Shown here: positions 1 through 61,436 of the stretch, piece after piece
How positions within the stretch are numbered: the first letter of the stretch is position 1
Layout of the letters: every line of letters starts with the position of its first letter
Assembly: GCA_002269645.1 (NCBI GenBank)
Contig: NIVC01002857.1
Coordinates: 70,874 to 134,873, forward strand
Reading direction: 5' to 3'
Source of the DNA: Macrostomum lignano
Lineage: Eukaryota
DNA: 64,000 nucleotides
The notes under the pieces: model-generated
The model's input: the letters and a program-made list of their open reading frames with translations, nothing else
Told to the model about the DNA's origin: nothing
The model's database searches: none
Position numbers and translations under genes: made by a program

Positions 1-968
1 GGGAGTAATGCCAGGATTGCAGTGAATTGATGGCTAGCATAAAAAACCAACGTCAAGCTTATATTAGGAAGATGCTGAGCGATTACGTAATCTCTCTTGC
101 TCTTTCTCGCTCTCTCGGCCGTCTCGGCGAGGACATTGATGCATTGCCGAATAGTGATGGCATCCACCATCCACCGCGCTGACTCCGCTAAATTAAATAT
201 TGACTTTACCGTTCGATTCCTCTCTGCTAAACCTTTGCGAGATTGACTTCCCACCGTCCGCAGGAGGACTGTTTGACTAAGGACTTGCCTATCAAGTTAT
301 TTGTTCTGTTGTTTTCGGGATTCTGGGCACAGCTAGGAAATTCTAGATGGAGATGGCAACCATCTACTTTCGACCTCTCTCATTTTTTTCGACTTTTGGA
401 CATAAAAAAACGACAACAACTCCATTTCTCTACTCTTATTCTTCAACTGCTCCAAGTCCTTCATTTCCTCACTGACCCGAGATGACCCCACAGGCGGGAG
501 AGAGAGAGCGAGAGAAGGTGGGTTGAAGGCTCAAAGTGAATAGCAATTCTCGCCCACAGTCCTCCCCCCTCTTCTCATTTTTACTGCAGCACCTCTTCTT
601 CTCTCTGTGTATCTTCTTCTTTTAGTTGTCACGCCCCTCCAGCCGCCCAGTCTGCTGTCACACGCACGCGCGCCTGTCGGCCTCTCTGCTTCCTAGAAGG
701 GAAAAGATCCCTATCCAAGCATTCTCGTTTCTCTGTAGCTATATTGAAGCACGCAGGCACCCCAGCCCAGCTGCCACAGAAACCCCCTGACCAGATGCTT
801 TATCGCCTAAGAGGGTTTCTGCTGCTTGGGTGCAAAGTGAGCAGCCTGTGATGGAGTACAGTACAGCCTCCAGCCATTACATAAATTATGGATATCTAGA
901 GCTTTCCTTCTAGTTGCATGTGGAATATCTACTCATCAGAGCTTTACTCTAGGGCTATCTCTACAGTC

Positions 969-1000
969 AGTTAGTTAGTTATTTAGTTAATTAATTAGTA

Positions 1001-1050
<50 letters not shown>
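969..1050. repeat. (AGTT)n microsatellite
   Basis: About 20 near-perfect AGTT units. Confidence 0.95.
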
Positions 1051-1436
1051 CTAGTTTGTGTGCTGCTCAGAAAAGCTGGAAAGTACGCGTTACAAAACGA
1101 CTCCCTGAAATACCCTGGATGAACACTTATTTTGCTTTTAGCTCGTAAAGAACATTCGGGTTCTTTCGTTAAAGCACAACAACAAGTAAACGGAGTTGAA
1201 AGGGCAGACTGTCTTTTGAAAACGCCATTTTCCTTCTTCTGCTTCTAAAAGAGCTTTTAGACTGATTAGCTTTCAGAAAAAGCTTCTGCAATGGGCAGTC
1301 AAGAAGGGACGCATTCGAGCTGTCTTAAACAGACCTTTTTGTACCCAACGCCTGCTCTAATCTAATAGCTTGGCATCTATTGCAGTCACAGTTGTGGACA
1401 GGAAGTATAGTAGGAGACGGAAACAGGGCCGGGCAG

Positions 1437-2009
<573 letters not shown>

Positions 2010-2767
2010 AACACACTGCCATTGCCTACCATAATTTTCCCATCCCCTACCGATATGTAATGCGAATGGCTTTAACAATCTAGAAGAGAGTGGGGATTCG
2101 TGTGGCAGGGCCCAGTCTCCACAAGGCAGTCAGCCAGTCTGCAGCAGGGCTTCTTTTTCATTTATTCGGGCTTCATCAAGATTTTTATTACTGCGCACAA
2201 CTCCTCATGACTAGCTGCAGCGCAATTTCGCACCTGGGATTTCTGCAGAAGGAAAGGTGGGTTCCCATCCCATTAGCCTAGCAACTCCCGGCATGGCAGC
2301 AGCTGGTCGAGTGTGACAGGAATTAGGGGGGGGGCTGTTATTATCTGACTGAACGTGCAGCAGCGCCCCAAGAAACAAGCGGCCGGGGGGAGGGGAGTAC
2401 ACAGAATATGCATTGCGGCATTCGCCCTGTCCGAGGCCACTAACCCTTCTCTATTCTATTCTACTGTTTTCTGGTCGAAAGAAACTTTTTTATATGAACT
2501 TGGGCTATCGCTGCGAGGCTGGACAAGACGAGAGGTTTGAGTGGGAGGCGCGGGGGTAAGAGAAAAGGGAAAAGAGCTGGGAGGATTACCATAAGCTTTC
2601 AAAGATATCCCCTATAATCATCTCTTAATACTATATGCACATACACAATACGGCTTTCTAACACCGCAGATGAGGATTATTAGTAATGCTGCATCCGCTT
2701 GGTTGTACTTTTATACCAAATAATAATAGATTTTTGCATTCAGCATGCACTCAAGACAACTGCTGCC

Positions 2768-3222
2768 CCGAGTCTATGGCCAAAATGATGGCCGATTTCA
2801 GAAAACAAAAAGAAGCTCAATTTTAACCCAATTCATGTCTATGGTTGAAACGCCTTTAGACCACAGACCACAATTTTAGGATCTGTGTTTTAAGACAGAC
2901 TTGCTTTAAAGACGGCCCCTGCGTTCTTCCTGGACTTTAATTCACAGCTTTAATGAAGCTACAAGTGTCACAGCGACTTGTCAAAACACTGCACAAGACA
3001 GTAGGAAATATTTTCACAAATAAGCATCCATCTAAGTGCATGTCTATGGACGAAACCTCTGAAGAAGCGCTTATGATTTGTCTAATTCCGTTTGTCCCTT
3101 GTCATTTGTAACTTGTCCGACTAGTGCTTTACGAAATGGGCCCTAGACACAAGAGGACTAAGCTAATGCTCCAAAGATGAAGTCTTTGCTCACCAAGTGA
3201 AACTTTTGGGTCATAGACTCGG
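2768..3222. mobile_element. Candidate MITE with about 18-bp imperfect TIRs
   Basis: Left end CCGAGTCTATGGCCAAAA (2768). Reverse complement of the right end is CCGAGTCTATGACCCAAAA (ends 3222). Internal GTCTATGG copies. No clean TSD seen. Confidence 0.5.
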
Positions 3223-3739
3223 TGTAGCGTTCTGACACTCTGGATTAAGTCAACTGCTCTAAAGCTCAAAGTGACTTCAATTGCGCGCTTTAGCAGAGGC
3301 GAGCGCGCACCACAGTCACTGTAGAAGTCTGCGCAGTTTTAGAAGCATGACAGTAGCTCGATCGAATCCCAAAAATAACGATCGGAAAAGTTTTATAATA
3401 TGACACAGCATAGCTACTGGTATAAATGCCTGCATATATACACTAGATATTATGTCAATTGTACTTTTAGCTCGAGAACGAGATAAGAGTCACTCTGCCT
3501 CGCGAGTTGTGCGCTCATCAAATTGTGGCATCTCTTGCTCTCGCCTCTACTATTCTTACTCCGTTGTACAGTCGGCTTCATGCGTATCGATGTAGCATCA
3601 TTTTATCTTTTTTCTGACTCTCGTTTTGCCTCGCTCTGTTTCTATCTGGGCTGACTCACTCTGACCTTTTAGTATAGCGTGACTCCAGCTTAACCTCTCC
3701 TATATCCTCTCAACTGGCTTAATTCTTCTCTGACCTTCT

Positions 3740-3975
3740 CAGCACCTTATTCATTCACGACCCCTTTTCTCTCTCTCTAACCCTCTACACACTCTCAATC
3801 TCTCCCTTGTCACCTAAAGTCTCCCATCTCATTCTCTCGCTACTTCTCTCTCCTCCCATTCTCTCTCCCCCACCCTCTCGCGCCTCGCCTTCTCTCCCCT
3901 CACTCTCTCCCCTCGACCTCTCTCCCTTCACCCTCTCTCTCCTCATCCTCTCTCTTCTTCCTATTAGCCTCCATT
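3740..3975. repeat. CT-rich polypyrimidine low-complexity tract
   Basis: About 230 bp dominated by C/T on the + strand. Confidence 0.8.
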
Positions 3976-5349
3976 TCCACACACCAACTTGAATTTCGAG
4001 GCTCAGCCTCTTCCCTTAACGTATTGTCTCCTAAATTCGACAGCGAACAGTCAGACAGACAGACCAATCGGTGTCGGATTGCACATGAGATCAATATAGA
4101 TAAAAGCCCGGGCCAGATCCCGTCCTTCTTGCAGAGCAAGTCACGCTGTCGGAGCTATGAAAAGTGCACGCTGAATCTAACGATTGATCTTTTTCCTAGC
4201 TCGTGTTGGGAAAGCTCCAGAGATCTGAGCTCTTCTCCATCTCTCTCTTCCCGGTCTCTCCCAGTCTCTCGCCGTCACAGCTTGCATTGGGTTGGTTTTT
4301 AAACAGATAAGTTGCACCAATCCCGAGGCTCGAATGCTTGCTTGGGCCGGATCCTTCTCTCTGATGCAGCACGTATTTAATTTATTCATCCCTCAGCTGA
4401 GAGGATATCGCTTGATGGATGTGCAGAGACCTAGCCAAAAGGCGTGAATATATATCGCATTTTGCTCGTCTACCCAATCCACCAATTTCAGTGAAAAGCG
4501 GAGATAACAACAGTAAAATTTCAATTGGCAGCATAGCAACAAGAAATCTTCTGCTTCTGTTCTGCATAGCCTCGGCGTACGGCGCTTGTTTTTTCGTTCA
4601 AGTTTAACTTTATTGAATAAATTTGCAGTGCGCTACTTTTGGTAGTAGTGTAGTTTGCTATTTACTATGAATTAAAAAAACTTTAATTCATTTAATTTTT
4701 GAATGGTCGCGGCTTGTTTTCCGTCTAACGTAATTTTTCCCAAGGTTTTTATTTTGCTTATTATCTGTACCCCAAAAAACAAAATATATGTACAATCCGA
4801 TCTATACGTGTACATTGATCGTTCTCCGTACATGTACGTTGCCCAGTCTGGGGTGCAATTTAATTCTACCCCTATTCCTGAGAAAATGTACACGCGATTG
4901 GTTTAATCGATTTTTAGCTCGCCAACCCCGTTTTAAAACTCATTCTGTAATTGGCTGGGCGCCCCACCCCTCCTCCAAGATTTCACAACCTTCTTATCGT
5001 GTCAGTGTCTGCGTTCGTACACACAAGCATATTCTACGCGGAAAAAATGTTTTAGTTTTTAACTTTAATTAATGCTTTCTCAAAGCTGCTTTTAGTTCAT
5101 CTTCGCGCTTGATTCCGTTTAGCAAAATTATATTTAATTTTAGTAACATTAAAATAAAATCAATTTAAATATAAGGCCAGATTTATGTGTTGTTGCAATG
5201 TTTAAAATACATCATCAACGTACTCAGCTGTGCGCAATCGATTAATGTCAATCCTATACGGTTTATGCAATGAGCTGTTCACAAATATCAAGTTTATTTA
5301 AACGCCTGAAGGACTTTAACAGTTCTACACGGCGCACGCTTCTTCACAT

Positions 5350-5690
5350 ATCCACCCCAGAGACACATATATCTCCATCCCAGAGACACATCTCCACCCG
5401 AGAGACACATATATCTCCATCCCAGAGACACTTCTCCACCCCAGAGACTCATCTCCACCCAGAGACTCATCCACCCCAGAGACTCATCTCCACCCCAGAC
5501 ACATATCTCAACCCCAGACACATATCTCAACCCCAGAGGCACATATCTGCACCCAGACACAATCTCCACCCCAGAGACACATCTCCACCCCAGAGACACA
5601 TCTCCACCCCAGAGACGCATCTCCACCCCAGAGACACATCTCCACCGCAGAGGCACATCTCCACCCCAGAGACACATCTCCACCCCAGAC
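5350..5690. repeat. 19-21-bp minisatellite (CCCCAGAGACACATCTCCA)
   Basis: Period 19 with 21-bp variants. Lies downstream of the stomatin stop codon. Confidence 0.9.
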
Positions 5691-5849
5691 ACATTAAATA
5701 TCATAACAGAGGTTAAATATCATACGAGCTTACACTACTCACGTGAGTAGAATGGAAATTTGTATTTGTATTTTACGTTTCAAAAATACGTGCCATATGA
5801 GCCCTAGAGACTGATTAATTACAAAGTTGATTCAGAACATAAAATTTTG

Positions 5850-5855
5850 TTTATT
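5850..5855 (-). promoter_or_regulatory. Candidate polyadenylation signal of the stomatin gene
   Basis: AATAAA on the - strand, about 170 nt after the stop at 6028. Confidence 0.45.
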
Positions 5856-6027
5856 TGCAAGCAAGGAATCATGAATTACATGTGATTTTTGCACAGATTC
5901 TATTCAAAATAGAAGTAGTAAAAATCGATCGCGAAATATTGAATCACAGAAAGGTTTTTAAGCATAACTTCAAGTTGAAGAAGTTTCAGCGCTTTTCGAG
6001 TTACGAGCTTGAACTCCGGGTGCTTAC

Positions 6028-9000
6028 TTAGCTAACCTTGGTTCTTCCAGCATTAAAGTGAGACAGAATTTCGATTGGTAGAGGAAAAATAACAGTAGAA
6101 TTTTTCTCAGCAGAAATTGTTGTCAGAGTTTGAAGATAGCGCAGCTGCAGCGCGGCCGGAGATTCGCTCATGATGTCGGCGGCTTCTTTCAGCGATCTGG
6201 AGGCCTTCATCTCACCGTCGGCTGCGATCACCTGGTGGGATAGAGGTCAGTGAGGCTGACTTGGTTTGAACACACTTTGGGATAGTATAAATTATTCATA
6301 CTAAATATGATCATCTGTCTCTCTTCTAGTGACGAAGAATGGGCCATCTGTCTGTCTGTTAGTGATGAAAAATGGCCACCGGTCAGTCTGGTAGTGATGA
6401 ATAATGACCACTTGTCTGTCTGTTAGTGATAAAGAATGACCACTTGTCTGTCTGTTAGTGATGAAGAATGACCACTTGTCTGTCTGTTAGTGATGAAGAA
6501 TGACCACTTGTCTGTCTGTTAGTGATGAAGAATGACCACTTGTCTGTCTGTTAGTGATGAAGAATGACCACTTGTCTGTCTGTTAGTGATGAAGAATGAC
6601 CACTTGTCTGTCTGTTAGTGATGAAGAATGACCACTTGTCTGTCTGTTAGTGATGAAGAATGACCACTTGTCTGTCTGTTAGTGATTAGGAATGACCATG
6701 AATCTTGCCTTATATTCGTGAATTAACCTATGACGTAGTATGACGAAGGATGTACCCAATTCCTTTCGTGTACCACTTGACGTCGCACACTACTTACTTT
6801 AGCTTTAGCATCCCTGTTGGCTTCCGCCTCGGCAGCCATGGAACGCTGCAACTGTTGCGGTAGACGCACGTCTTTTCTGTAAATTTGCCAAAAACGTTAT
6901 TTTTTAGGATGTGTTCAGGGTGGAACGGAATATTTAGAATATTGAGCATGCTCTGCACAAGCGATCCTTACACTTCCACGCGTTCGACTTTTACGCCCCA
7001 TGGATCAGTTGCTTCATCTAGGATGCTCTGTAAGACGTTGATAATTTTCCGTCTATGGTTTCATGATCACGTGATAAAATCGACTTATCCACAGCCCAAC
7101 GCCCGACAAAAGTGAAGTGTACGCAAGTGACACCAGCACTCATTTGCAGTCCAACAACACCCCACAAAAGTGAAGTGTACGCAAGTGACACTAACATTCA
7201 TCTGCAGTCCAACAACACCCCACAAAAGTGAAGTGTACGCAAGTGACACCAGCACTCATCCGCGCAGTCCAACAACACCCCACAAAAGTCAAGTGTACGC
7301 AATGTGACACTAGCACTCATCTGCAGTTCAGCAACACCCCACAAAAGTCAAGTGTATACGCAAGTGACACTAGCACTCATCCGCAGTCCAACAACACCCC
7401 ACAAAAGTCAAGTGTACGCAAGTGACACCAGCACTCATCCGCGCAGCCCAACAACACCCCACAAAAGTCAAGTAGAGCCCATATAATTGCATGACAAAGT
7501 TAAAAGACCTCACCGAAATGCTCTGACTCATGGCGTCCCTCTCGCTTAATATCTCACTAAGAGTTCTGGACCCCAGAACATTTCTTAACGTAGTCTGAGC
7601 CAGATATTTTGTCGACGAGTCAACATCTGACACGGCTGTCACTGATAAGATCGGATTAACAACTTTGTAGTAAACTACCGCGTCAACGGATACTGTCACT
7701 GAGTCTCTTGTTAGAATCTGGAATGCAATAAGTTTTTTCTTGTAATGAATTATTCTTAACTTTCTCCATATACATGTAAATAGTCTGCGCCGCTATATTA
7801 CGGCGAATCCGTGATGCATCTAACTTTAAAAGTACATTTGGAACGATCAATATGCTTACCAGTGTGTTGTTCCAGATATAATAAGTTAATACAGCTGTTT
7901 TTGCTACCTCCAAAGGGAAGGGTAGCTTAGTAGTATCTAACTGCACATAACTTACATCTAAAACTAATTACAGATGCTGTAGCAAAAGATAACAGACAAA
8001 TCGTGGAAACTTACCGCCTGAGGCGGCACATCAAACATCAAAGTCCTCAGGTCCACAATTCGTATTTGATCAACGCAGGGCACAATCAGAAACAGGCCGG
8101 GACCCTTGGCCCTGCCGGACACAATTCGGCCAAGACGGAAGATCACCGCCCTCTCGTACTCCTTGATGATCTGGAAGGTAATCATTCATATCCAGGTCAA
8201 AGGCCTAATTTGTTCAAAAATCTCCTCACGACTGTCCATGATTAAATCGGTGCTTGACTAATACTGTCAACGAACGGACAAGTGCAGGACCAATAAGGTC
8301 TTGATCTAATGACCTAAACAGACCATGACTCAACCAGTTCATGCATCAACCATGTATTCCATGACTCAGCCAGTCCATCCATGACTCAGCCAGTCCATCC
8401 ATGACTCAACCAGTCCATCCATGATTCAACCAGTCTATGACTCAACCAGTCCATGACTCAACCAGTACATCACTCAATCAGTCCATGACTCAACCAGTCC
8501 ATGACTCAACCAGTCCATTATCTCGTACTCAACCAGTCTATTATCTCGAACTCAACCAGTCTATTATCTCGTACTCAACCAGTCCATTATCTCGTACTCA
8601 ACCAGTCCATTATCTCGTACTCAACCAGTCCATTATCTCGTACTCAGCCAGTCCATTATTAAACCATGCAGTCCATGACTCAACCAGTTAATGGCTCAAC
8701 CAGTCCATGACTCAGCCAGTCCATGACTCAGCCAGTCCATGACTCAGCCAGTCCATGACTCAGCCAGTCCATGACTCAACCAGTTAATGGCTCAACTAGT
8801 CCATGACTCAGCCAGTCCATGACTCAGCCAGTCCATGACTCAGCCCAGTCCATGACTCAGCCAGTCCATGACTCAGCCAGTCCATGACTCAGCCCAGTCC
8901 ATGACTCAGCCAGTCCATGACTCAACCAGTCCATAACTCAACCAGTCCATGACTCAACCCAGTCCATGACTTAACCAGTCCATGACTCAGCCCAGTCCAT

Positions 9001-9381
9001 GACTCAACCAGTCCATGACTCCACCAGTCCATGACTCAACCAGTCCATGACTGCAGTTACGATCACGTGACCAAAACTGTCGATAACGGAAAATTCTCAC
9101 AAGTCGCCGATTTAGCAAAGTCTGTAAAACAATACTACAATGCATGTTTTCCTTACTTTAATGAACACAAGCATAGACAGCGGCAGGGTTAGCAGTGTCA
9201 GAAGTACAGCCAGCGCTACTAGCAGGTAGCCGCAACATCCCAAGCTTGAACTGGTTGGCCTGAGCTCTGAACCCTTCGAATACTGCTGCCCCTGGTTGCT
9301 GGCCTCCGGCTCCGGGCTGACTCGATTTGGTTCAATAAGATTGCTGCGCATTTCTACAGTAACGCCGCTGGCACTGCTCAT
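6028..9381 (-). CDS. STOM: Stomatin / band-7 (MEC-2-like) membrane protein, 307 aa, 6 exons
   Basis: Exons 9381-9157, 8170-8015, 7717-7514, 7027-6972, 6876-6798, 6231-6028. All GT-AG, phases consistent (924 nt). Motifs: CC plus hydrophobic hairpin, [85 protein letters not shown]. Confidence 0.95.
6335..6700. repeat. 32-bp minisatellite, stomatin intron 5
   Basis: Unit TTAGTGATGAAGAATGACCACTTGTCTGTCTG, about 11 copies. Confidence 0.95.
7108..7475. repeat. About 58-bp minisatellite, stomatin intron 3
   Basis: Unit beginning AAGTGAAGTGTACGCAAGTGACAC, about 6 copies. Confidence 0.95.
8322..9052. repeat. 16-bp minisatellite with a 23-bp variant block, stomatin intron 1
   Basis: Unit CCATGACTCA(A/G)CCAGT. 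The variant CCATTATCTCGTACTCAACCAGT occurs at about 8515-8660. Confidence 0.95.
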
Positions 9382-10103
9382 TACAGTTTTTACCTGTCGA
9401 ATCTTGTAATATTATTTGGTCGCATAGAAATCTCTTATATACCCAAATAATCTGTAGCTCTATAGCTTTAGCCAATGGCCAACTTTATATTAATTTAATT
9501 TAGCACCGAGACTGATTAGATAAGAGGAGAGAGAAAATAAAAAATACAGTACAGAACGCATAGGCTACACTCAGTGTCTACTTTTACGTACACAGCTCTT
9601 TATTTGTCATGGCGATAGCAGTCAAAGACCACTTATCGACTGATATTAATATTAGCTCAGCTTGATTGATTAAATTACAGTAACCTGTCGTCACTGGTTG
9701 TTAGACATTAATTCACTAATTAGGATCGCCTCAGTTTATGAGCAAGGAATGCATTTAGTTAATTTTATCGACTCGTATTAGTCATTGCATACATAAAAGT
9801 GTAAGGATTATATATTGTAAATGTACAAGTACAGTTGCAGCCAAGTGGTTTATGTACATGCGCATTAATATCAATCCACAAGTACATTGCACTATAGTTA
9901 CTGTACTTATATTATTATCAGCTCTAGAGTATAAGTGTACACTAATATTAAAAAAAACACAGAAAATATAGAATAGTGTCTAAATCTACAATGGAAAACA
10001 AATATCAGGAGTTCTATATTAGTATTTGATATCGCACTCAATTATAACTATAATATCATTGCGCTGATTTAATACATGTACTACGGTATTTAGTAAATTG
10101 GAA

Positions 10104-10328
10104 TCAGTAGCAGCCTCTGCAATTGCCTGTGCAATAGTCTCTGCAAGCGCACGAACAATTGTTGTTGCAGCAATCGCTATGGAACACGCAGAATCCTCCA
10201 GTTAGCTGGCAATCGTCAGTAGAAATTGGCAGGTGCGAACAGGCGGACACGGAATGGTAGTAGTATGTGGCGCACATTGCCAGTGCGATGACTGTGCTAT
10301 AGAACTGCACCAGGCGCTGTGAATTCAT
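10104..10328 (-). CDS. Candidate secreted cysteine-rich (knottin/conotoxin-framework-like) peptide, 74 aa
   Basis: MNSQRLVQFYSTVIALAMCATYYYHSVSA-CSHLPISTDDCQLTGGFCVFHSDCCNNNCSCACRDYCTGNCRGCY*. Hydrophobic N-terminus, 10 Cys in the last 35 aa with a C-x6-C-x5-CC-x3-C core. A 3' splice-acceptor-like CTCTACAG lies 44 nt upstream of the ATG, and ATTAAA lies about 30 nt after the stop (10068-10073). Confidence 0.65.
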   Translation of the reverse strand: MNSQRLVQFYSTVIALAMCATYYYHSVSACSHLPISTDDCQLTGGFCVFHSDCCNNNCSCACRDYCTGNCRGCY

Positions 10329-11085
10329 AACTTTGCGAAATCCGAACTTGCCAAGCAGCCGCACATTGGGATCTGTAGAGTAACGATTTCACGAAAGCAA
10401 TATAACGTAACGCGTGTGTTTTCCCACGATTTTGCGGACCGCACGACCCACGGAATCGTCGATATGTGATCGCGGTATAGTCTATGGCATTATTGGCGTA
10501 GAAAAATATAAATTTAACAAACAGTATGATGCTGTCAACATAACAGAAGTACATTTTTAAACAATACGTCGTTAGAAGAATATTTCATTAAATGTAGAAG
10601 CTGTGCCGACAAGTAAACTGTATTTCTCACACGGCTTCGATCCGTGTTAGTTGATGTGCAGCCACAGCCGACTAAAGGTGGTAAGGTGGCCGGTTGCTAA
10701 GGTAAATGTCGACTTTGACGACTGTTCAACCTGTTTGATGTTGTCTCATTCTTGTAAATCTTGTTTCGGATTCCGAAAAAGTTTCCACGTCATTGAGGTC
10801 CAGGATATATATTGGCAATCACAACCACTGATCATCGACGACAGACGTATTCGCGCTCAGTTTGGATTATTAATTCCAATTCCGCTAGTTTCATTTATGG
10901 TCAATCCTTACATAGCGGCGCCCTCGGATCGAAATAATGAGACATGACAGATTTTGCAGACCTCGGATTTCACTTATTCCAGCCCTCAAATCCATAGTCA
11001 TAAACAGTTATGGTCAATTTTAGCGGATTGCCATGATACAAGACAATACAAGATATATATAGATAGATAGATGAAAATATGTAAA

Positions 11086-11500
11086 GGAGGCCGTAGCCTA
11101 GTGGTCTAGCGCTGCGCTCTGATGTGCCAGCGGCCCAGGCTCGATTCCAAGTGCAGTCACATTAATTTGGGGCTACATTGGAATCTCGGCTTGGCTCTGC
11201 TCGTGCAATTAATGCCCTTAAGGGCCAACCCCCACGGCACAGTGAAGTGTACATGCCTAACGATAAATAAAGTTAGGGCTGCTGTACACTACGGTGAGTG
11301 TGTGCCTGCGCGTATGACTGCGTACGTATCCGCGCGCTTGTGTGCCTGCTCTGGGGAGTCGGCGGAATGGGCAGTGATGCCTCTCGCCGTTTGTGTGACA
11401 ATGTCGCTTAAAGTGCACCAGGGTACACAGCCCCTGCCCCTAGCTAAACAGATGGATTGACAGATTAGAGACAAAAAGTACTAAACAAACGCTTGAAATT
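11086..11500 (+). mobile_element. tRNA-derived SINE, family A, long copy
   Basis: A-box-like GTAGCCTAGTGGTC and B-box-like GGCTCGATTCCA. The first about 195 bp are shared with the copy at 14621. 3' boundary approximate. Confidence 0.75.
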
Positions 11501-11869
11501 TGCTCATATTTTGCTTAAACAAATCAAAATGATCAACCTAACGATATCATCTCACAATGTATTACATAGTGATAGTGGCACAAACAAATTAACGGCAGAT
11601 ATAATGGCTAATGATTAAATATTTTGTGTTTCATTTAAATATTGAATGAATTCTCCAACTTCAAAGCAAGTAAAACTTTTGCTATAAAAGAAACCAAAAA
11701 TTGATTAAAAATCGGTATCAACACACAGTTATAAACAAAAATTATTTTATAAATAAATTATTGTAGTTAACACGTTGACGAATAGCATAGGCAATACAGA
11801 CTAGTGTAATAAATCTGGATTTCTGAAGAGCACCTAGAGTATGTAAGCACAGTTGCGTGTGTATTCATG

Positions 11870-12420
11870 CCACTCACTGTGGCGTCCGTCTAACATCCAC
11901 TATGGCGCCAGCTCTCTATATTATAGAGGCGTCTCTCTATAACACTAACTATGGAGCCTCTCTAACACCCACTGTGGCGCCTCTCTATAACACTAACTGT
12001 GGCGCCTCTCTAACACCCACTGTGGCGCCTCTCTAACACCCACTGTGGCACCTCTCTAACACCCACTGTGGCGCCTCTCTATAACACTAACTGTGGAGCC
12101 TCTCTAACACCCACTGTGGCGCCTCTCTAACACCACTGTGGCACCTCTCTAACACCCACTGTGGCGCCTCTCTAACACTCAATGTGGCGTTTCTCTAACA
12201 CCCACTGTGGCGTCTCTCTATAACACTAACTATGGAGCCTCTCTAACACCCACTGTGGCGCCTCTCTATAACACTAACTGTGGAGCCTCTCTAACACCCA
12301 CTGTGGCGCCTCTCTAACACCACTGTGGCACCTCTCTAACACCCACTGTGGCGCCTCTCTAACACTCAATGTGGCGTTTCTCTAACACCCACTGTGGCGT
12401 CTCTCTAACATCCACTATTC
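11870..12420. repeat. 23/25-bp minisatellite just 3' of the FPGT stop, with a 188-bp higher-order duplication
   Basis: Unit CTCTCTAACACCCACTGTGGCGC. The variant order starting at 12071 recurs at 12259. Confidence 0.95.
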
Positions 12421-12448
12421 AATGGTTAGTAAAAGGCACATCTGGTAT

Positions 12449-15400
12449 TCAGAAAGTCATCCTGAACTCTATCAGAGCTTTGGTGTCCTTCTCCATGACA
12501 ATATCAGCCATGCTCATCAGTCTTCTCTCTTCGGGCTTTTCAGCCAGCCAGTCAACCAGTCTCCAAGACTCGCTGCTCCATCTCAACAACTTAAGCGTTG
12601 TCAACAAAGACTGGTCGCCTTGTCCATGGCCGCCAACCGCTGCAGTCCAAGTCCTGTCGCAGGGGAACAGTCTAGCAGTCCACAGGCTGCCACTGCCAGA
12701 CCATTCCGCCTCGTCCAATGGCAGGCCGTGGCGATGACAGAATTCCACCAACGGTCTGCCAAGAAATTTGGCTTCGGTTAAGCTTTGCTGCTTTGGATTG
12801 TCGTCCGAGTGCCAGGCCCACGTGACTTGGCCGGCTCCAGCTAGTAGCGGCACGGTCTGCAGCACCCAGCCATCCGGGATGACCAGTTCAGCTTCCGGCT
12901 CGCGGCATCGGCAATGACTCAACAAGCAGCCCGACCCGATGCGGCAGGAGCGAGCGGAGATTTCGCAGAATTCCAATGCGGAACCGGTTCCGTTGGATGA
13001 GATTTCCAAGCCGTTGGCTATGTTGATGCGAGAGTTGGTGACAAGGATAGGGCTGAAATAGGAAGTTTAATGCTTCTCTCTGTAGAGATTAGATTGATTA
13101 TTCCCTAAATCTCATAGAGATTAGATTGATTATTCCCTAAATCTTATAGAGATTGATTATTCCCTAATCTTATGGAAACTAGACTAATTTTTTCCTAAAT
13201 CTCAAAGGAATTAAATTGATTATTCACTAAATCTCATAGAGATTAGATTGACTATTCCCTAAATTGCATAGAGATTAGATTGATTATTCTCTAAATGTCA
13301 TAAAGATTAGATTGGTTAGTCTCTAAATCTCATATAGATTAGATAGATTATTTCCTAAATCTCACCCAGCGTCTCAACAATAGAGATTAGATTGATTATA
13401 TTCCCCAAATCTCATAGAGATTAGATTGATTATTCCCTAAATCTCATATAGATTAAATTGATTTTATTCCCTAAATCTCACCCAGAATAAAGATGGGGAT
13501 AAGATCTGATATTGTATTCAGAATAATATCTAGAAATGAGACAATATCATAAATCTTACCCACTGTCAGGTGCAGCGGCGGTGCTGAAGCACCTGGCTAA
13601 TTCGATAGGCTGAAACAGGTTATTCAAGTATTCTTTAGTGCTGCCAATGTGGACCAGTGCGGATCGTTCAATGCGGCACAGTTTGAGTTGTCTTCCTTTG
13701 AGCAGCTCAAACAGGCTCGTGCGCAGCTGGGCGAGACGAGCAGCTGTCGATGGACTGGGATGCCGGGTCAGGTTTCGAATCTCGTTGACGTAGTCATCGA
13801 GATGGGCGTCTCTGGGAGAGTGGGCGAGAAACCAATGCGGGACATGTTCAGTGGGTGCTCTGATCCTTCAGTGGGTGCTCTGACCCTTCAGTGGGTGCTC
13901 TGATCCTTCAGTGGGTGCTCTGATCCTTCAGTGGGTGCTCTGACCCTTCAGTGGGTGCTCTGATTCTTCAGTGGGTGCTCTGATTCTTCAGTGGGTGCTC
14001 TGATTCTTCAGTGGGTGCTCTGATCCTTCAGTGGGTGCTCTGATCCTTCAGTGGGTGCTCTGATCCTTCAGTGGGTGCTCTGACCCTTCAGTGAGTGCTC
14101 TGATTCTTCAGTGGGTGCTCTGATCCTTCAGTGGGTGCTCTGATTCTTCAGTGGGTGCTCTGATTCTTCAGTGGGTGCTCTGATTCTTCAGTGGGTGCTC
14201 TGATCCTTCAGTGGGTGCTCTGATTCTTCAGTGGGTGCTCTGATTCTTCAGTGGGTGCTCTGATCCTTCAGTGGGTGCTCTGATCCTTCAGTGGGTGCTC
14301 TGACCCTTCAGTGGGTGCTCTGATTCTTCAGTGGGTGCTCTGATTCTTCAGTGGGTGCTCTGATCCTTCAGTGGGTGCTCTGACCCTTCAGTGAGTGCTC
14401 TGATTCTTCAGTGGGTGCTCTGATTCTTCAGTGGGTGCTCTGATTCTTCAGTGGGTGCTCTGATCCTTCAGTGGGTGCTCTGATCCTTCAGTGGGTGCTC
14501 TGATCCTTCAGTGGGTGCTCTGATCCTTCAGTGGGTGCTCTGATCTTCAGTGGGCGTGCTAACTTCAACCCGACAGACACTCCAAGTCCCTCTATAGTGC
14601 GACAAGGTCGCTCTCACCTAGGTGCCGTAGCCCAATGGTCTAGCGTAGCGCTCTGATGTGCCTGCGGCCCAGGCTCGATTCCAAGTGCAGTCACATTAAT
14701 TTGGGGCTCAATTGTAATCTCGGCTTGGCTCTGCTCGTGCAATTAACGACCTTAAGGCTGAGGGCCCCCAAGGCACAGTGAAGTGTACATGCCCAACGAT
14801 AAATAAAGTTAGGGCCCCTGGGTCTAATAAAAAGGCCTCTCTCACCTGCCCAGTCCCCGCAGCAGGTCTCCGTAAGCATCCAGCTCCACCCCAGCCATGG
14901 AGGATTCGTTGGCATCTCGCCAGGCCAATAAGGCTTCGATGAAGTGACCGTTCAACCAAAAATTTGAATCAATCAAAATGCTACCATCTGTGGAGTCGAT
15001 AAGCCCGCTAGCTGATCGCATCTCCGCAATAGTCGGTTTTTGAAGCACCCGAGAACAGTCCAGAACGGTGAAGCTATTCGAACTGCATCGATAATCCTCT
15101 TGGTTGCTTAGCTCCCCCTGGTCAACATCTACGCAGTAAACTCCGTGTCCGGTTGCTAAGCTCAAATCCACAGTGGGATGGGCTAAAGCGACTATGTCGG
15201 ACTCGGCGAGGCGGCGAGAACAAGTCGAATTGGATATTAGACTGATGGAATCGAACTTGTAGGGTAGCAGAGCGTCTGAGCAGGCTGTGCGGGACAGGGT
15301 GGGCGTTTAAGAAAGAGCTAAGCACTGGTTAGAGATTTGACAGATCTTGAAGCTTATTGTACAGACACCTGATCGGTCATTGTACCAATATCTTGAAGCT

Positions 15401-16487
15401 TATTGTACAGACACCTGATCGGTTATTGTACCAATATCTTGAAGCTTATTGTAGACACTTTATCGGTTGTTGTACCAATATCTTGAAGCTTATTTTACAG
15501 ACACCTGATCGGTTGTTGTGCCAATATCTTGAAGCTTATTGTACAGAGACCTGATCGGTTGTTGTACTAATATCTTGAAGCTTATTGTACAGAGACCTGA
15601 TCGGTTGTTGTACCAATATCTTGAAGCTTATTGTACAGAGACCTGATCGGTTGTTGTACCAATATCTTGAAGCTTATTGTACAGAGACCTGATCGGTTGT
15701 TGTACCAATATCTTGAAGCTTATTGTAAAGAGACCTGATCGGTTGTTGTACCAATATCTTGAAGCTTATTGTACAGAGACCTGATCGGTTGTTGTACCAA
15801 TATCTTGAAGCTTATTGTACAGAGACCTGATCGGTTGTTGTGCCAATATCTTGAAGCTTATTGTAAAGAGACCTGATCGGTTGTTGTACCAATATCTTGA
15901 AGCTTATTGTACAGAGACCTGATCGGTTGTTGTACCAATATCTTGAAGCTTATTGTACAGACACCTGATCGGTTGTTGTGCACGCTTGGGTTGTTCTGTT
16001 CCAAAAACTGCAACATACCTAAGAAACAGCATCCAACGCCAGCATTGGCAGCGAACTGCGCAAACGGTTCCGACAGAGCAGTGACAATGTCAAGCATATC
16101 CAAGCAGCCCGCGCTGACTGTTGGCATCACAGCGAATAATTTTCCTAGGGCGGAAAGCCATGGCGACCGTTGGCTCATGCCACCAGCTGGGATAAATAGT
16201 ATTCGCAGTTTAGATAATTTTTTGATGCCAAATTCCAGTCGAAGCTGGTTGAGACAGTGCAGCAGAGCGCCGCCATTGCCTGTAAGTTAGGAAAGCAGTT
16301 TAGGCACAACTATATGTTTAGTGATCCGAAGATGAGTTTTAATTTCACTCACCAATTTTTGGACCTGGTGGATCCGAGTAGATTCTTAACTTGTCTTTAA
16401 ACTTTTGCTCGCCTAGTATTTTATAACCCAAAGCTTGGTCAGAATCAGACGCGCAGATGGCAATAATGTCAAACGATGTTTTTCGAT
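12449..16487 (-). CDS. FPGT: Fucose-1-phosphate guanylyltransferase (GDP-L-fucose pyrophosphorylase); start exon not located
   Basis: Exons 16487-16353, 16279-16019, 15284-14846, 13811-13560, 13052-12449. GT-AG, phase consistent, about 563 aa. Motifs matching the FPGT family: FDIIAICASD, YSDPPGPKIGNGGA, AGGMSQRSPWLSALGKLF, ALAHP..LATGHGVY, ELDAYGDLLRGLG, LFELLKG..LVHIGSTKEYL, SLWTARLFP. Confidence 0.88.
13078..13485. repeat. Degenerate 32-bp minisatellite, last FPGT intron
   Basis: Unit AGAGATTAGATTGATTATTCCCTAAATCTCAT. Confidence 0.9.
13846..14556. repeat. 20-bp minisatellite, FPGT intron
   Basis: Unit CTTCAGTGGGTGCTCTGA(T/C)(C/T), about 35 copies. Confidence 0.97.
14621..14832 (+). mobile_element. 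tRNA-derived SINE, family A, short copy in an FPGT intron (antisense to the gene)
   Basis: Homologous to 11086-11280 (GCTCTGATGTGCC..GCGGCCCAGGCTCGATTCCAAGTGCAGTCACATTAATTTGGGGCT..GATAAATAAAGTTAGGGC). Ends in AATAAAAA. Confidence 0.75.
15345..15978. repeat. 46-bp minisatellite, FPGT intron
   Basis: Unit TCTTGAAGCTTATTGTACAGAGACCTGATCGGTTGTTGTACCAATA, about 13-14 copies. Confidence 0.97.
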
Positions 16488-17939
16488 CTAAAATAGGTGT
16501 AAAATGAAGCCAGAAGCAGAAAAATAGATTAGCATTGCAAGATTTCATATATGATATAAAACAGGACTGTCTACAGGCTTAACTTAAGAAAAAATGAAAT
16601 TTTCAGTTTAAAAAATTTCTTACTGTTTGTTTTGTAGTTTTGCAATAGAAAATCAGGTGAAACTAACATTTTCAATTTCTGTTAAAATCGGAATTACGAA
16701 ATATGGGAGATTATTAAGGCGAAAATAAGTTTACATTCTGTAGTTCATCACGCAATTTTTTAAACCTTACGATAATTTATAAAGTGAATCGGAAAGAAAT
16801 AAAACATAGGCATTTGAAAGCGGTATACACAATACACACGCAGTGCAGGCTTAACCTGAACCAGTGAGCCAGCCTGTCAAAAAACTTAACCTAATAAGTA
16901 ACTTAAAAACTCGCAAAAACGAACAACACTTTCTCAGAAAAACACATACTAACAATTTGTATAGTTTTTGAAATCTTCGAAAAATAAAAAAGTATATGTA
17001 CTAAATCAATAATTTTATTTTTCTTTATAGTAGATTAAAATTAAATAACATTAAGCCTATTAATGATAATCGAGTAGCAGAAATTTAAGCATAAAGAAAT
17101 TCTACGAAACGCGCACTACTTATGAGAATTGAAAGTTTGCCGTTTGCGTTTACTAGACAATACTAGTCTTTCGTTGCCTGCCAGTTATGCAGTCACTGTC
17201 GAAGTACTTAGTCCTAATCTATGTTAACACTTTAAGATAATAAATATATGAAAGTAGTGTTAGTTAGTTATTTATTTTTAGGATAATTTGTTTTAAATCA
17301 GTCGTTTTTATGACTTTATACATGAAATGATTTTATGATTAGCCCGCCCCCCCCTCCCCTAGTACAAGCCAAGCTGGTCAACAGTTCAAGCCCTCAGATT
17401 TAAGAATAAGTAGAGTAACACTAACAGTTACCTGGTAACTCCAGTTTGTAAAAGTAGCAACAGTCTCAGTTTTTACTGCTTGTAGTCAGTAGTCCTAGTC
17501 TATGACTCTATTTTAGCACTGTTATCTGAATGCAAAAAATAGTTTTGATATATGAATTAATTAAATAAATCAATAAATTTTCTTTGAATGAATGAATGAA
17601 TATAGTGGCAATGCTGTTAAATATTAATTGTTACTTTATTTTTATGGCAAATGGTTGGTCATTTTACCAAGGCCTAGGAACTATATTAATTTATAAAATT
17701 GGACCTAATAATTTGAAAATTACTATTTTAACTCAATAGTAATAATCTAGTATATTTCATAATATTCAACTAGGCCTCCTTAAAGTGTTCCAACTACTTA
17801 CACTTGCAGTAGTACTAAGGTAGGCCTAGGCCTATTATTAGTGTTAGACTATTGCATGGCATATTGTATGAAAATTATTTGATATAGACCTACAAAGTTT
17901 TTTATCAAATTAGACCTAGACATCACACTTTGGATCATG

Positions 17940-18130
17940 TAGTATACAACCCAAAACTTGGGTGTGCATTGGCCTTGTATGCATGGCAAAAGTTGGTATA
18001 CACAGTTGGCATCCAAGGTCCATTGGCATCAATTTGTGTGCCAAAGCATGCCCAAAAGTTTACATGAATTTATATGCCAACTTTAAAAGGGGTCATTTGT
18101 ACATTGGAATTTTCTGGCATATATGTAACT
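17940..18130 (-). mobile_element. CpG-decayed relic related to the GGCGTA-rich element at 49.5 kb
   Basis: 18098-18128 aligns to the reverse complement of 49462-49492 at 26/31 identity. Four of the five mismatches are CpG to TpG/CpA. Confidence 0.55.
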
Positions 18131-19001
18131 TTCTTGAGTCTTGGTTGGCATGCATTACTCCTAAGAAAATAGTTTGCATACACACTTATGCACTTTATAG
18201 AATCAATGGAAAAGTTATTTTAAAATAGAAAAAAGCTGAAAAAGTTAATTTTTACATAAATTTTAAGCTTTGGGGTCTTTTAAAAGCTTGTAATAAATCA
18301 GTCAAATAAATCTTTACATGTATTGATTTTCTTCTATAAATAATATTGCCAAAAAGCATAAAAATCAAATTAATCATATTATTTGCCAAAAAGGGTCTAT
18401 TGGGTCATTCCATATAATGACGGTTGTAACATTCTTACATACAAGCTCATGAATTAGTCCCTGTAATAAGCTAAAATCGTTTATATTTAAGTCATTCTAA
18501 AAGCAAAATATGTCTGTTACACTAAAAAAATTGTTTTACTCATTTGACTAATGATAACAAAATAAATTGAAGGCTAAGTTACATGATGGTCGTAACAAGA
18601 GAAATTGAAACAGTTGAAGGATGTCTTTTGTGTTTGTGAATTTACTCAATCTACAAATCTTAGAGGCACTGTAATGAATAATAATGTGTTGAAATGTTAT
18701 TACAACAAGAAAAAATAGTGCACATAATAATTGCATAACAACTCTTTGAACTATTAAACTTGTTTTAAACCTTGCGGTCGTAACATTGCGGTCGTAACAA
18801 ATTTCAAACTACCGACTTCTAATTTTTTTTTTCATTTCAGATCAACAAAGTACTATCCCTTGGCAAATTTCTACCTTTGAATAATAAATGAATAATAGAA
18901 TAGCTATTTTTTGTGTTATCAACCATTTCAGACCAATATTTTCATCACTGAATAGTCAGAAGTTGTGGCAAGCATAAGAAGCATAAGTTGGAAGAATAAG
19001 T

Positions 19002-21416
19002 TCATGGAAGACCATCAAAACGGAAGTGGCCCCGCCTGTCGACAGGAGTTGGTGGGCTAATTTCCTGAATTATATCTACTTGATAATAATAAATTTCGTC
19101 CTTCTTCTTAGGCCACATGAAATGGCGGTCACCAGACTTGGCCATGACGTTGACCCGGTACTCAGTGGCACTATCATCCGACTTCCTAATTTTGGTGACT
19201 TCGCCAGGGTATTTCGACTCATTGTAGTTCACGAGCACCCATGTTCCAACTACAATTGAAATTGCAGTTCGGCTGGCCGACGTTGCTGAAGGATTTCCTT
19301 CAAGTGCATGATTCACCGGTGGCTTGGCAGTAGCCTCGGATTGAGCAGCTTCAGTAAGTGCTTGCATTGTAGAGAGAGGCGAACGGTAAGTAGCTCGGAC
19401 TGATAAGCTTGCAGACCAGAAGTGATCCTTCTTGATATTGGCGATCTACAGTTATTTGTTGTAAGCTAGCTATAAATAAAACATAAACTGTTTGACTGCA
19501 TAGCTGTAACAACTTAAATACAATCAGATTCGTACCGCAGGTGCAGCCGATAGGATGTTCACAAATTCCTCGTTATATATGGCTTGGATCTCCTCCTGGG
19601 TGATATAGTGGCACTCGATTCGGCAGTCTTCAACGGCTACCAGAAATTCATGGGCGTTTCGTACAAGCAGGCGGCCTGACCTCACTTTGATCCGCGCAGC
19701 ACGCTTCAAGGTGCCACCAAGGCCGTCGATAGCCCCTTTGCCGTGGCTGGTCGCGAAGAAGTTCCATGTCGCGCGTGACAGCTGGAACTTCTGGACGAGC
19801 ACCGAGAGCATGCAGTGCATGTACCGGTTTTTAAACTGCGATGCCGGCCCATCACTCCAGATGTGCACTGTCATGTTGGGCACACAGATTTGCTGTAAAT
19901 AAGTTAAGTATTCATGATCGTATTCGAAATGAGTATTTGGAATTATTAACTAATAAATGTTTCAATATGTTTACTTTGAACAGATGGTCCAGGAAGACCG
20001 AGACCGTCTCTCGGCCATGGTTAGTCGTGTCGCTGACGATCGCGAGCATTTTCTTCTTCGACTTCCAGTACACAGCAACAGTAAAGATCGTGACCTGTTG
20101 CTGGCACCAATATGCACTCTGTGTGGCATTCTGACTCACACACGAGTAATTTTCTGAGACGTCGAAGTGAATTACGACCTCCGAGTTTTCTGACAAATTG
20201 TCCTTTTGTTGCCGGTGGAAATCGGCCTGTTGGCGGTTGGTGAGATGATGCACCAAAAATTTCGGCAGGTTGATCAACAGCTTCTGCATGCCATCTTGCA
20301 GCGTACTGCTGTTTTTGTTGGGCTGCATGCGTCCAGTGTCACGGTCGACTTCCCACGACAGGTAGTTGATCTGCACTGCAGCTTGCTCACGAGTTGGCGC
20401 CGGAATGCGATGAGCGAGACCTGATGAGCAGTTCTCGCACTGTGCCAGCTTGCAAGCCTCGCTGATGGGGCTGCACAGCACGAACTTGTCGACCCAGGAG
20501 CGAGAATATTCGTCAATGCCTGGCATCCGCTTAGCGATGGCGTTGCATAAACTGGAATAAGAACGTGGTTTATAAAAAATCATTTTGTGGGTTAAGAAAA
20601 ATTCTTAAATTTTGGTCATATAATTAATTACAAAAAAGTGAATCCTACTTCTGAAAGTTGCTGTGATAAGTGCAGCAGCAAGCCTCCATCGGAGTCTTCT
20701 CCAATGTGATGACGTTAGGTGGCCGCAAATCACAGAACTTAGAGAGGGAAATTTTACGTTCTGGTGCTTCGTCCAGAAAGACGCGATGGCACTCTTTCAA
20801 ATTCATAAGCAAAAATCGCTTTTGCAGCTGCTGCCTGTTGACCTTTATGAATTCCTTGACACCCGGTGACCAGCGGGAGATGTCCTCCCGATTATAGAAT
20901 TGGAGGACGGCGTCCTGGGTTCCAGGGTCCAGCTTCTGCCGTGTAGCTGGAGCTGAATCCGCAATAACTAGACCGCAGTCGGCAGCTAGCTGGCGCACAA
21001 CGGCTAGGCGCCTATCGGGAGTGTTCGGCAGAGCGTCCTTGCACCTGCAATGAATTTAAAATATGATTTTCTAATGATTTTCACTATTCTTTAAACACCT
21101 TTGAACCATAATAATTGCCATTAACGACTTACTTATTCACTGCCCGAGTGTGCGTGCGTTTGCTGCTATACGGATCGCCTTCAGCAGCCTGTACATCAGG
21201 TACAGCAGGAGCCTGTTCAGCAACAGCGGCCGCTGCTGTCTTCAGACGCTGGCGCATCTTTTTCATTCGCTCCCTTGCTTGTGCACGCTGCTTCGCAATA
21301 TCTGCGCTGTCTGCGAACTGACGCCGCACTCGACTGCGCTCTCGCTCGGAGGCTTGAAGGACATCGCCAGCTCGACGACGAAAATTCCGACAGTTTTCCG
21401 CGCTCGTTTTCACCAT
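19002..21416 (-). CDS. DDE/D transposase of the Sola-type element, 685 aa, 5 exons
   Basis: Exons 21416-21133, 21044-20649, 20551-19975, 19892-19536, 19445-19002. Total 2058 nt, no internal stop. Introns are 82-97 nt GT-AG. Motifs: HFDVSENY, QSAYW..QVTIFT, HIWSDGPASQFKNRY, WNFFATSHGKGAIDGLGGTLKR, Cys clusters, and C-terminal WVLVNYNESKYPGEV...F.WPKKKDEIYY. Confidence 0.85.
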
Positions 21417-27017: not shown

Positions 27018-36302
<9,285 letters not shown>

Positions 36303-51220: not shown

Positions 51221-52634
51221 GACCAGACAATTCTAAATTTAATCCTCAGATTATACAAGTAGCTCGATCTTACTTCTTACAGAAAGCTGCAGAAATGCAC
51301 ATCCTGATTCTAAGTTGTAGTTGTTTACAAATCAGAGTCAAATAATTGAAAGATAGTAAAAAATCATTAAGTACACATGCATCCTGCCCATCAGTCAGGT
51401 CTGATCGATTAGTCAAAAGGCCTAAGCAAATTTTAAAATTATGACACTGACAAATATTAGTTTAAGTTAATTGTATTTAAGTTTTACATGCATTATGTTA
51501 ACCATATACCTGTAGGCTTTAACAGTTATATTCTTGGAATCAAATCAGGATTACATGCATGCATAGATGTGTAAAAAAAGTGGATAAAATTGGCCAATTA
51601 TTCTAATTCTTATTAGTTAAACGTGCACGTTTGTAGGCCAAAGTGGCACAAAGTAGGTCAAATCGAATGGACATAGACTCATAGAGATCTCGGGCAAAAA
51701 AACAACCAGACTCCGTGCACAAAACGCGACGACACAAGCCTACAACATATAATACACGCGATAGTACCTTAGGAGAGTTGTCAGGACAAACAGGATTTTG
51801 AGCCTAACAAGGCAATTGTAGGAAAGGAAATTGTAGATTTCAATTCAATTCAAGGATATGGTGAAAAATGACATATAGCGATTCATTCTATTATTTGTGG
51901 ATTATAAAAGTGCAAAAATCAAAGTGAAAAATTATTCCCACTTGCATGAATACAGTGTATAGCATCGTTCGTCACGAAAAAATACCAAAATTATAATTTA
52001 AACTAAGTCTGTTTTGCCTTAAAGTACATGCACACTTTCATTAAAACGAATTATTTTATTTACGAAAATAAACAAATTGCAGGATTTCAAAAAAATCATC
52101 AGAATACAAAATTATAAAGCTAGAACTATAAAAAAAGATACAAAGTAAGAAACTATGCGGCTATCAAACTCTGGAGGAAAAGCAAATCCATATTTTTAAC
52201 TTTAATTAGCATTAATAAAATCGAATACTTGACATAATTTTCGCGCACCACGAGATCTGCAAGCCAAACACGAGCTATAGTACTATTATGTAGTAAGTAC
52301 TATATACCTAAACTCTGTAACTACGCAAATCTCTGAGCGGGAAAGCAGGTGCAAATCAATATATTCGGTGATTTAAACAGTCATTTTTACAATTGGATTT
52401 TTTTTAAATCGCATCAACTTTGGCTCGAATCGAAATAACCTGCTGTTGCCGACTACCGCCGCTTGCAGTCACCGTCTTGGAAAAGATGATTGCCAAAAGT
52501 CTGAAAAACATTGGTTTACTTTAAGTAGTTTGGATTCCTTTTTGCTTTGGTTATTGGTTTTTCTACCACTACCAGACATAGACGGATAAAACGGAAAATG
52601 ATGGCTATTGGTGCTTTTTTTATGGTGCTGGCGC

Positions 52635-54428: not shown

Positions 54429-61436
<7,008 letters not shown>

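Follow-up and report, generated by a model that had tools for sequence, protein, structure and literature searches.

A candidate gene for a small secreted cysteine-rich peptide between the FPGT and stomatin genes of the flatworm Macrostomum lignano

The stretch of Macrostomum lignano DNA analysed here, referred to as the window, comprises 64,000 nt of contig NIVC01002857.1. On its minus strand lie the genes for FPGT (PF07959, CDS 16669-12449) and for a stomatin with a Band_7 domain (CDS 9381-6028). Between these two genes, as the original prediction had it, a complete single-exon coding sequence of 225 nt is found on the same strand (10104-10328), the FPGT stop (12449) being 2,121 nt and the stomatin ATG (9381) 722 nt away. 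As read from the window, its start codon is the ATG at 10328-10326 and its stop codon, included in the interval, is the TGA at 10106-10104. The 74 codons specify a precursor of 74 aa, MNSQRLVQFYSTVIALAMCATYYYHSVSA followed by CSHLPISTDDCQLTGGFCVFHSDCCNNNCSCACRDYCTGNCRGCY, with a total of 12 cysteines. An 86-aa version of the ORF with a GTG start was also considered in look-ups of the exact product.

Residues 1-29 of the precursor (10242-10328, minus strand) constitute a putative signal peptide, with MNSQR as the n-region, TVIALAMCA as the hydrophobic core and HSVSA as the c-region. The core reaches a Kyte-Doolittle maximum of 2.4 over 9 aa. The best 19-aa window of the N-terminus has a mean of 1.17, which is too low for a membrane anchor; therefore, the N-terminus fits a signal peptide better. 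The residues at -3/-1 of the VSA site are small and agree with signal cleavage. The ORF and its signal-like N-terminus ending in V-S-A are thus present as they had been described. The last 35 aa contain 10 cysteines in the arrangement C-x6-C-x5-CC-x3-C-x-C-x-C-x3-C-x3-C-x2-C, exactly the spacing previously given. The cysteine count of the original prediction stands for this part of the protein, but it had missed Cys19 inside the hydrophobic segment and Cys30 right behind V-S-A, so that the mature form would contain 11 cysteines unless the precursor is cut after Ser31. Cleavage after V-S-A29 would leave the odd number of 11, while the alternative cleavage after A-C-S31 also satisfies the rule of small residues at -3/-1 and would leave an even 10.

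The mature peptide predicted from the former site (10107-10241, minus strand; 45 aa, 11 Cys) contains 2 F, 2 Y and two His, with more aromatics before the mature part. With a net charge of -2 and no Lys it is anionic, in which it differs from most cationic antimicrobial peptides. Its core is C40-x6-C47-x5-C53C54-x3-C58, followed by C-x-C-x3-C-x3-C-x2-C. In the part of the CDS encoding the tail, Tandem Repeats Finder reports a 12-nt tandem repeat of 2.9 copies (10112-10146; minus-strand units TTGCAGAGACTA, TTGCACAGGCAA and TTGCAGAGGCTG) with a score of 49 and 78% matches, which spans just 35 of the 225 nt. As this repeat encodes CRDY-CTGN-CRGC, the last three or four cysteines of the tail arose by micro-duplication.

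The Mlig_3_7 assembly (GCA_002269645.1) contains three copies, ~95-99% identical, of the FPGT-peptide-stomatin(-next gene) block. The copy termed L003 is located on NIVC01002857.1 itself, in reversed orientation and 100% identical to positions 1-19381 of the window. Copy L001 on NIVC01000163.1 has the same gene order and strand (FPGT PF07959, peptide, Band_7 stomatin) and an overall identity of ~95% to the window, and L002, the third copy, is located on NIVC01001378.1. The stomatin is likewise found in GenBank as three near-identical copies on three scaffolds. [quoted passage not shown]

The annotation state of the three genes differs. Annotation covers FPGT and stomatin in every copy and the peptide gene in one of them, L001; at L002 and L003 there is no gene call between FPGT and stomatin, despite the intact ORF. 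The L001 gene model (PAA89122.1 / A0A267GV01 / BOX15_Mlig006797g1) is described as a "hypothetical protein" of 74 aa with one CDS exon. It is 99% identical to the window ORF over 74 aa, with the change S3P, and is found in the same FPGT-peptide-Band_7 order, so that both near-identity and shared genomic context equate the ORF with the annotated gene Mlig006797. Hence GenBank and UniProt do list the gene, as a hypothetical protein, yet it is not annotated at the window's own locus. The designation "unrecognised" is appropriate for this locus and for the third copy, but not for the gene as such, given its deposition as PAA89122.1. The suffixes g1 and g2 of the locus tags were considered, and rejected, as a sign that genes belong to one polycistron: the stomatin copies on three scaffolds are tagged g1, g2 and g3, and therefore the suffix numbers duplicate copies and not the members of a polycistron.

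For Mlig_3_7, GenBank carries as its annotation the coregenes subset of the genome-guided transcriptome Mlig_RNA_3_7_DV1; the inputs of this transcriptome were StringTie/TACO output, de novo assembly and spliced-leader (SL) and poly(A) read evidence (PMC5730564). Since the annotation is transcript-derived, it follows from the gene model that the L001 copy was covered by an assembled transcript. For the exact 74-aa or 86-aa product, no transcript-derived protein is on record; the stomatin is likewise without a Logan source, and this missing record therefore says nothing on expression. The gene identifier had no match in indexed full texts, nor in those supplements of four M. lignano papers that were searchable.

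All three copies have an intact ORF with an indel-free CDS, while the flanks do carry indels. Compared to the window, L001 has S3P and one synonymous TGT>TGC change at Cys58, and L002 has C19W. Both amino-acid changes are located within the putative signal peptide, and C19W fits with Cys19 being a non-structural position. The 45-aa mature part is 100% identical at the protein level across the three copies, with one synonymous change. The non-repeat intergenic DNA of the three copies differs by ~1-2%, and the CDS, with 2 substitutions in 225 nt, shows no stronger conservation than the non-coding DNA next to it. The comparison of the three copies for selection comprises 3 substitutions, too few to show purifying selection.

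An indel-free block of 491 nt around the CDS (9990-10480, minus strand) is a candidate for the extent of the transcription unit. It contains 7 substitutions with respect to L001, 2 with respect to L002 and none with respect to L003, and on both sides the DNA is more diverged and carries indels. Within it, a candidate splice-acceptor-like site, CTACAG (10373-10378), lies 45 nt upstream of the ATG, and ATTAAA, a variant that may act as a polyadenylation signal, lies 30 nt past the stop (10068-10073). Both elements had been foreseen and are indeed present; together with a uORF and the ATG context, with its purine G at -3, they are invariant across the three copies. The acceptor motif enriched in SL trans-splicing of M. 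lignano is [T/C]TNCAG, and the spliced leader ends in ATG (PMC8629364). The CTACAG at 10378-10373 agrees with this motif.

The uORF just mentioned counts 13 codons (MCGCLASSDFAKL, 10325-10366, minus strand), and its TGA overlaps the main ATG in the sequence ATGA. Its frame is that of the spliced-leader ATG, if trans-splicing uses the acceptor at 10373. With the CTACAG acceptor in use, the leader ATG and the ATG at 10366 would be in frame, resulting in a 16-codon uORF that ends on the main ATG. Translation of the peptide ORF would therefore need reinitiation or leaky scanning. The uORF may exert translational control or may merely be due to chance. As an alternative to trans-splicing, a TATA-like element, TTTATATTTTT (10502-10512, minus strand), directly upstream of the 491-nt block, could drive a conventional transcript of ~430 nt. 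A scan for bacterial promoters and terminators is irrelevant here, the source being a eukaryote.

Is such an ORF to be expected by chance? Its length by itself is unremarkable, as the window contains ~84 ATG-ORFs of at least 60 aa. Its cysteine content is a different matter. Among the ~11,800 ATG-ORFs of 60 aa or longer in 200 order-1 Markov windows, the highest count was 8 cysteines per 35 aa, and 9 did not occur. When the CDS was shuffled with its dinucleotides preserved, a procedure that controls for local TGC richness, 8 of 20,000 cases had 12 in-frame cysteines, and none of the 20,000 had them without a stop. TGY codons are distributed over the three frames as 12/5/0. The cysteine density of the ORF is above chance, globally as well as with local composition controlled. 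The original prediction had called such a density unlikely in an AT-rich background, which is borne out by the 200 windows and the 20,000 shuffles, but the background is just mildly AT-rich: the flanking intergenic DNA has a GC content of 0.39, compared to 0.51 for the ORF (GC3 0.61), which forms a GC island, and the stomatin exons have a GC3 of 0.51. Elsewhere in the 64 kb, a density of 10 or more Cys per 35 aa is reached solely by translated (CAGA)n simple repeats. Tblastn and a cysteine-density scan revealed no paralogue of the peptide in the 64-kb window; the remaining cysteine-dense stretches were dismissed as paralogues, since they are simple repeats, lie in another frame of real exons or run antisense to these.

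Tandem repeats are exceptionally dense over the whole length of the window, in which 46 Tandem Repeats Finder rows have a score of at least 300, with periods of 4-187 nt. Many of these are located in FPGT and stomatin introns, and examples of arrays are found at 1434-2013, 13847-14554, 15344-15979, 29991-30978, 38564-39496 and 40014-41132. The lengths of the arrays differ among the three genomic copies. Upon translation, (CAGA)n arrays give CLSV-type pseudo-cysteine-rich ORFs. A G-rich 16-nt array, GAGGGGTTTGAGGGGT (57712-58795, ~66 copies, GC skew 0.55), gives rise to a spurious 406-aa minus-strand ORF; its sequence may be prone to form G-quadruplexes, and it adjoins a protein-kinase exon on the minus strand (58931-59368). 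A gene suggested by the Pfam match "Extensin_1" at 52608-53276 on the plus strand (101.8 bits, slightly short of the cut-off of 105) was rejected as an artefact of a translated 15-nt repeat, AAGCCCCTGGTGCTA, present in 38 copies.

Repeats are also found in and around other genes and ORFs of the window. On the plus strand, at ~27200-33500, there is a Sec24-type COPII gene with exons for the zf-Sec23_Sec24, trunk, beta-sandwich and helical domains. A 42-nt tandem repeat that is in frame and rich in Pro/Gln (27399-27679) lies in the first large exon of this gene, and long (CAGA)n and 29-nt arrays are found in its introns. On the minus strand, a 614-aa ORF (41702-43546) with a weak match to RRM_1 (E 0.0012, below the cut-off) is located in an island of 60% GC. 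It has an internal 21-nt tandem repeat (42399-42655), and satellite arrays with units of 27/28 nt and 35 nt flank it.

Searches for relatives of the peptide gave little beyond the peptide itself. In a word-indexed search of 5.8 billion protein clusters, the sole match was M. lignano PAA89122.1, and an exhaustive phmmer search of 1.84 billion representative proteins retrieved just this same protein. The lack of homologues conserving the cysteine spacing had been named in advance as speaking against the gene, and no such relative was found outside M. lignano in these collections; consequently, there is no evolutionary test of the cysteine pattern. In a Pfam scan with E-values up to 10, no family was assigned; the sole match was to Conotoxin_I2 (PF17557), with 7.5 bits versus a cut-off of 27 and an E-value of 6.2, while PF02950 was not reported and no inhibitor cystine knot (ICK) family matched. 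Among 177,635 PDB sequences nothing was significant. The best match was nemertide alpha-1 (6ENA), with an E-value of 1.3 for the 74-aa query and of 0.4 for a 35-aa query; at these values, the alignment of CQLTGGFCVFHSDCCNNNC with CIATGSFCTLSKGCCTKNC is not significant. In the same collection, the tail CRDYCTGNCRG gave weak matches, also not significant, to the CxxxC helices of CS-alpha/alpha scorpion kappa-KTx toxins (E 1.2-2.4). Metallothioneins yielded no match in Pfam, in the PDB sequences or in the 1.84-billion-protein search, and no paper was found that ties ICK peptides to flatworms.

Modelling has had a similar outcome. AlphaFold2, run without an alignment, gave low-confidence models with a pLDDT of 46 for the 45-aa peptide and of 58 for the 37-aa core, both with a helix on CRDYC, and a Foldseek comparison of the predicted model to the PDB had 0 matches. 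With such pLDDT values and no Foldseek match, any structural conclusion from the models was discarded, and structure prediction argues neither for nor against a knottin. The peptide cannot be demonstrated to belong to a named family; what it has in common with ICK peptides is the cysteine framework, as a pattern only. The assignment as an ICK peptide or knottin therefore holds in so far as the cysteine spacing fits the consensus, but membership is not shown by Pfam, the PDB or the models.

The reading we consider moderately probable is that of a genuine gene, restricted to this lineage, whose small product is secreted and rich in disulfides; a knottin-type core is its leading fold, though unproven. 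The observations in support of this are the ORF itself, its non-random cysteine content, its conservation in three copies and the transcript-derived model at one of these. How the peptide is secreted, cut and cross-linked, how it folds and what it binds we infer as follows. The N-terminal signal peptide would take the 74-aa precursor into the ER, where signal peptidase would cut after V-S-A29 or after A-C-S31. The product of 43-45 aa would then fold oxidatively into a compact peptide with five disulfides. In this peptide, C40, C47, C53, C54 and C58, together with C66 or C70, would be the six core cysteines with ICK spacing, and the remaining ones, coming partly from the 12-nt tandem duplication, would add extra bridges. 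Finally, the peptide would be secreted by a gland or epidermal cell and act outside the cell by binding a target. This could be a channel, a receptor or an enzyme, and it could belong to a predator, a competitor, a microbe or a mating partner.

A second possibility is that the peptide is secreted and disulfide-rich without being a knottin, its tail forming a helical CxxxC hairpin, or the whole a granulin-like stack or a covalent dimer via the eleventh cysteine, in which case the ICK-like spacing would be coincidental. The presence of 11 cysteines after VSA, the failure of ICK family profiles to match, the kappa-KTx matches of the tail (E 1.2-2.4) and the helix at CRDYC in both AlphaFold2 models can all be cited for this. 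However, those matches are not significant and those models are of low confidence. Moreover, ICK peptides are classically marked by C-x6-C-x5-CC-x3-C with a Gly-aromatic pair before the second cysteine, and an ICK peptide is also the best PDB match. Such a non-knottin fold seems unlikely. Still less credit is due to an intracellular or membrane-tethered metal-binding micro-protein. There is a likeness to metallothionein cluster motifs in CC, C-x-C-x-C and C-x3-C as well as in the string NCSCAC, and the acidic net charge and two His would suit such a role. However, no metallothionein match was obtained in Pfam, the PDB or the 1.84 billion proteins, and the aromatics (2 F and 2 Y after the signal, more before) and the hydrophobic N-terminus are atypical. 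This makes a metallothionein-like protein highly improbable.

It has also to be considered that the ORF is non-functional and resides on a low-level intergenic or non-coding transcript, its cysteines stemming from TGC/GCA-rich, partly 12-nt-repeat sequence and its integrity from recent duplication. The ORF is an orphan, is annotated at one of three loci and is preceded by an upstream ATG; its divergence is not below that of neighbouring non-coding DNA, its cysteine pattern is partly repeat-derived, and tandem repeats, a source of cysteine-rich pseudo-ORFs, are extremely abundant in the genome. All of this is in line with a non-functional ORF. Nevertheless, no local shuffle out of 20,000 has 12 in-frame cysteines and no stop, the distribution of TGY codons is as uneven as 12/5/0, and the repeat accounts for only 35 of the 225 nt. 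Furthermore, the signal-like N-terminus, the purine at -3 and the poly(A) signal 30 nt past the stop are combined in one compact unit, and both replacement changes fall outside the mature part. On balance, we regard the non-functional ORF as rather improbable.

Coming back to the reading of a real gene for a secreted peptide, a more far-reaching version of it can be imagined. The peptide could be a Macrostomum-specific, possibly de novo-born knottin, arisen from intergenic DNA between two ancient housekeeping genes, with a cysteine tail built by 12-nt microsatellite-like duplication in a repeat-saturated genome. It could be a five-disulfide ICK-type defence or toxin peptide, convergent on or very distantly related to nemertean mucus toxins. 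This scenario is decidedly doubtful; if true, no such peptide would have been described before from free-living macrostomid flatworms.

An orphan cysteine-rich secreted peptide in a flatworm will be no surprise to the specialist. If the peptide is made and secreted, it would provide a knottin-like disulfide-rich scaffold from a genetically tractable flatworm. M. lignano permits transgenesis, RNAi and in situ hybridisation, and the producing cell type and the function are therefore directly testable. The gene illustrates how a peptide can gain extra cysteines through short tandem duplications. As regards annotation, a transcript-annotated, duplicate-rich assembly drops identical paralogues of short genes, here at two of three loci. 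At present, an orphan with three almost identical copies is of limited comparative value, and the gene is tied to no specific biological role.

In relation to known systems, the peptide has to be placed in the first instance by its cysteine framework. The loops of ICK peptides range over about 3-7, 3-8, 0, 1-4 and 4-13 residues. In the compact knottin fold with its beta-hairpin, the cysteines pair I-IV, II-V and III-VI and the third of these bonds threads the ring; the 10-11 cysteines present here would allow many pairings. The cysteine order C-C-CC-C-C is present here with loops in these usual ranges, the candidates for the sixth cysteine being C66 (x7) and C70 (x11). The O and I2 conotoxins (PF02950, PF17557) share this framework with the Macrostomum precursor, and they have an N-terminal signal such as is predicted for it. 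In contrast to them, the latter lacks the conserved superfamily signal sequence and a pro-region, and its score for PF17557, 7.5 bits, is below the Pfam gathering threshold of 27. A metallothionein membership is at odds with the hydrophobic N-terminus and with the several Phe, Tyr and His.

Spider toxins offer another parallel. Toxins of the omega-agatoxin-IVA type combine a principal structural motif, C-x6-C...CC, with an extra structural motif, C-x-C, and in spider toxins with C-x-C after the fifth cysteine, extra disulfides staple the knottin beta-hairpin. The Macrostomum peptide shares with spider ICK toxins of at least four disulfides C-x6-C, CC and a C-x-C directly behind the fifth cysteine. 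It differs from them in that there is no sequence or profile similarity, the precursor is without a propeptide dibasic site, and the last five cysteines differ in number and spacing.

The best sequence match with a solved structure, nemertide alpha-1 (6ENA), belongs to the alpha-nemertides, whose loops C-x6-C-x5-CC-x3-C (6/5/0/3) are identical in the Macrostomum peptide. The motifs C..TG.FC and CC..NC are common to nemertide alpha-1 and the Macrostomum peptide, and both are small peptides of soft-bodied spiralian worms. Alpha-nemertides, which lineid ribbon worms carry in their mucus, are ICK toxins directed at sodium channels and are known solely from Lineidae; the members of the family are 77-97% identical to each other (PMC8406415). 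They have 31 aa and 6 Cys, a fourth loop of 5 residues, a Hyp-containing C-terminal tail and an aromatic patch of Trp22 and Phe24, and the Phe before Cys II is reported to be important for their activity (PMC8406415). This Phe is also present in the Macrostomum peptide. A membership of the family is not borne out by the similarity, which is not significant (E 0.4 and 1.3), nor by the architecture, as the Macrostomum peptide has 43-45 residues and 10-11 Cys and differs in sequence after Cys V. In comparison to the nemertides, it has 4-5 extra cysteines and a repeat-derived tail, is anionic and belongs to another phylum.

A further comparison is to be sought within the genus itself. Macrostomum reproduction-related genes evolve fast, according to two studies (PMC7336406, PMC5977470), in the searchable supplements of which the gene identifier was not found. 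Lineage-specific small secreted Macrostomum proteins, for example those of fast-evolving reproduction-related or prostate transcripts, are short, orphan and signal-bearing; the precursor described here is likewise short and orphan, with a putative signal.
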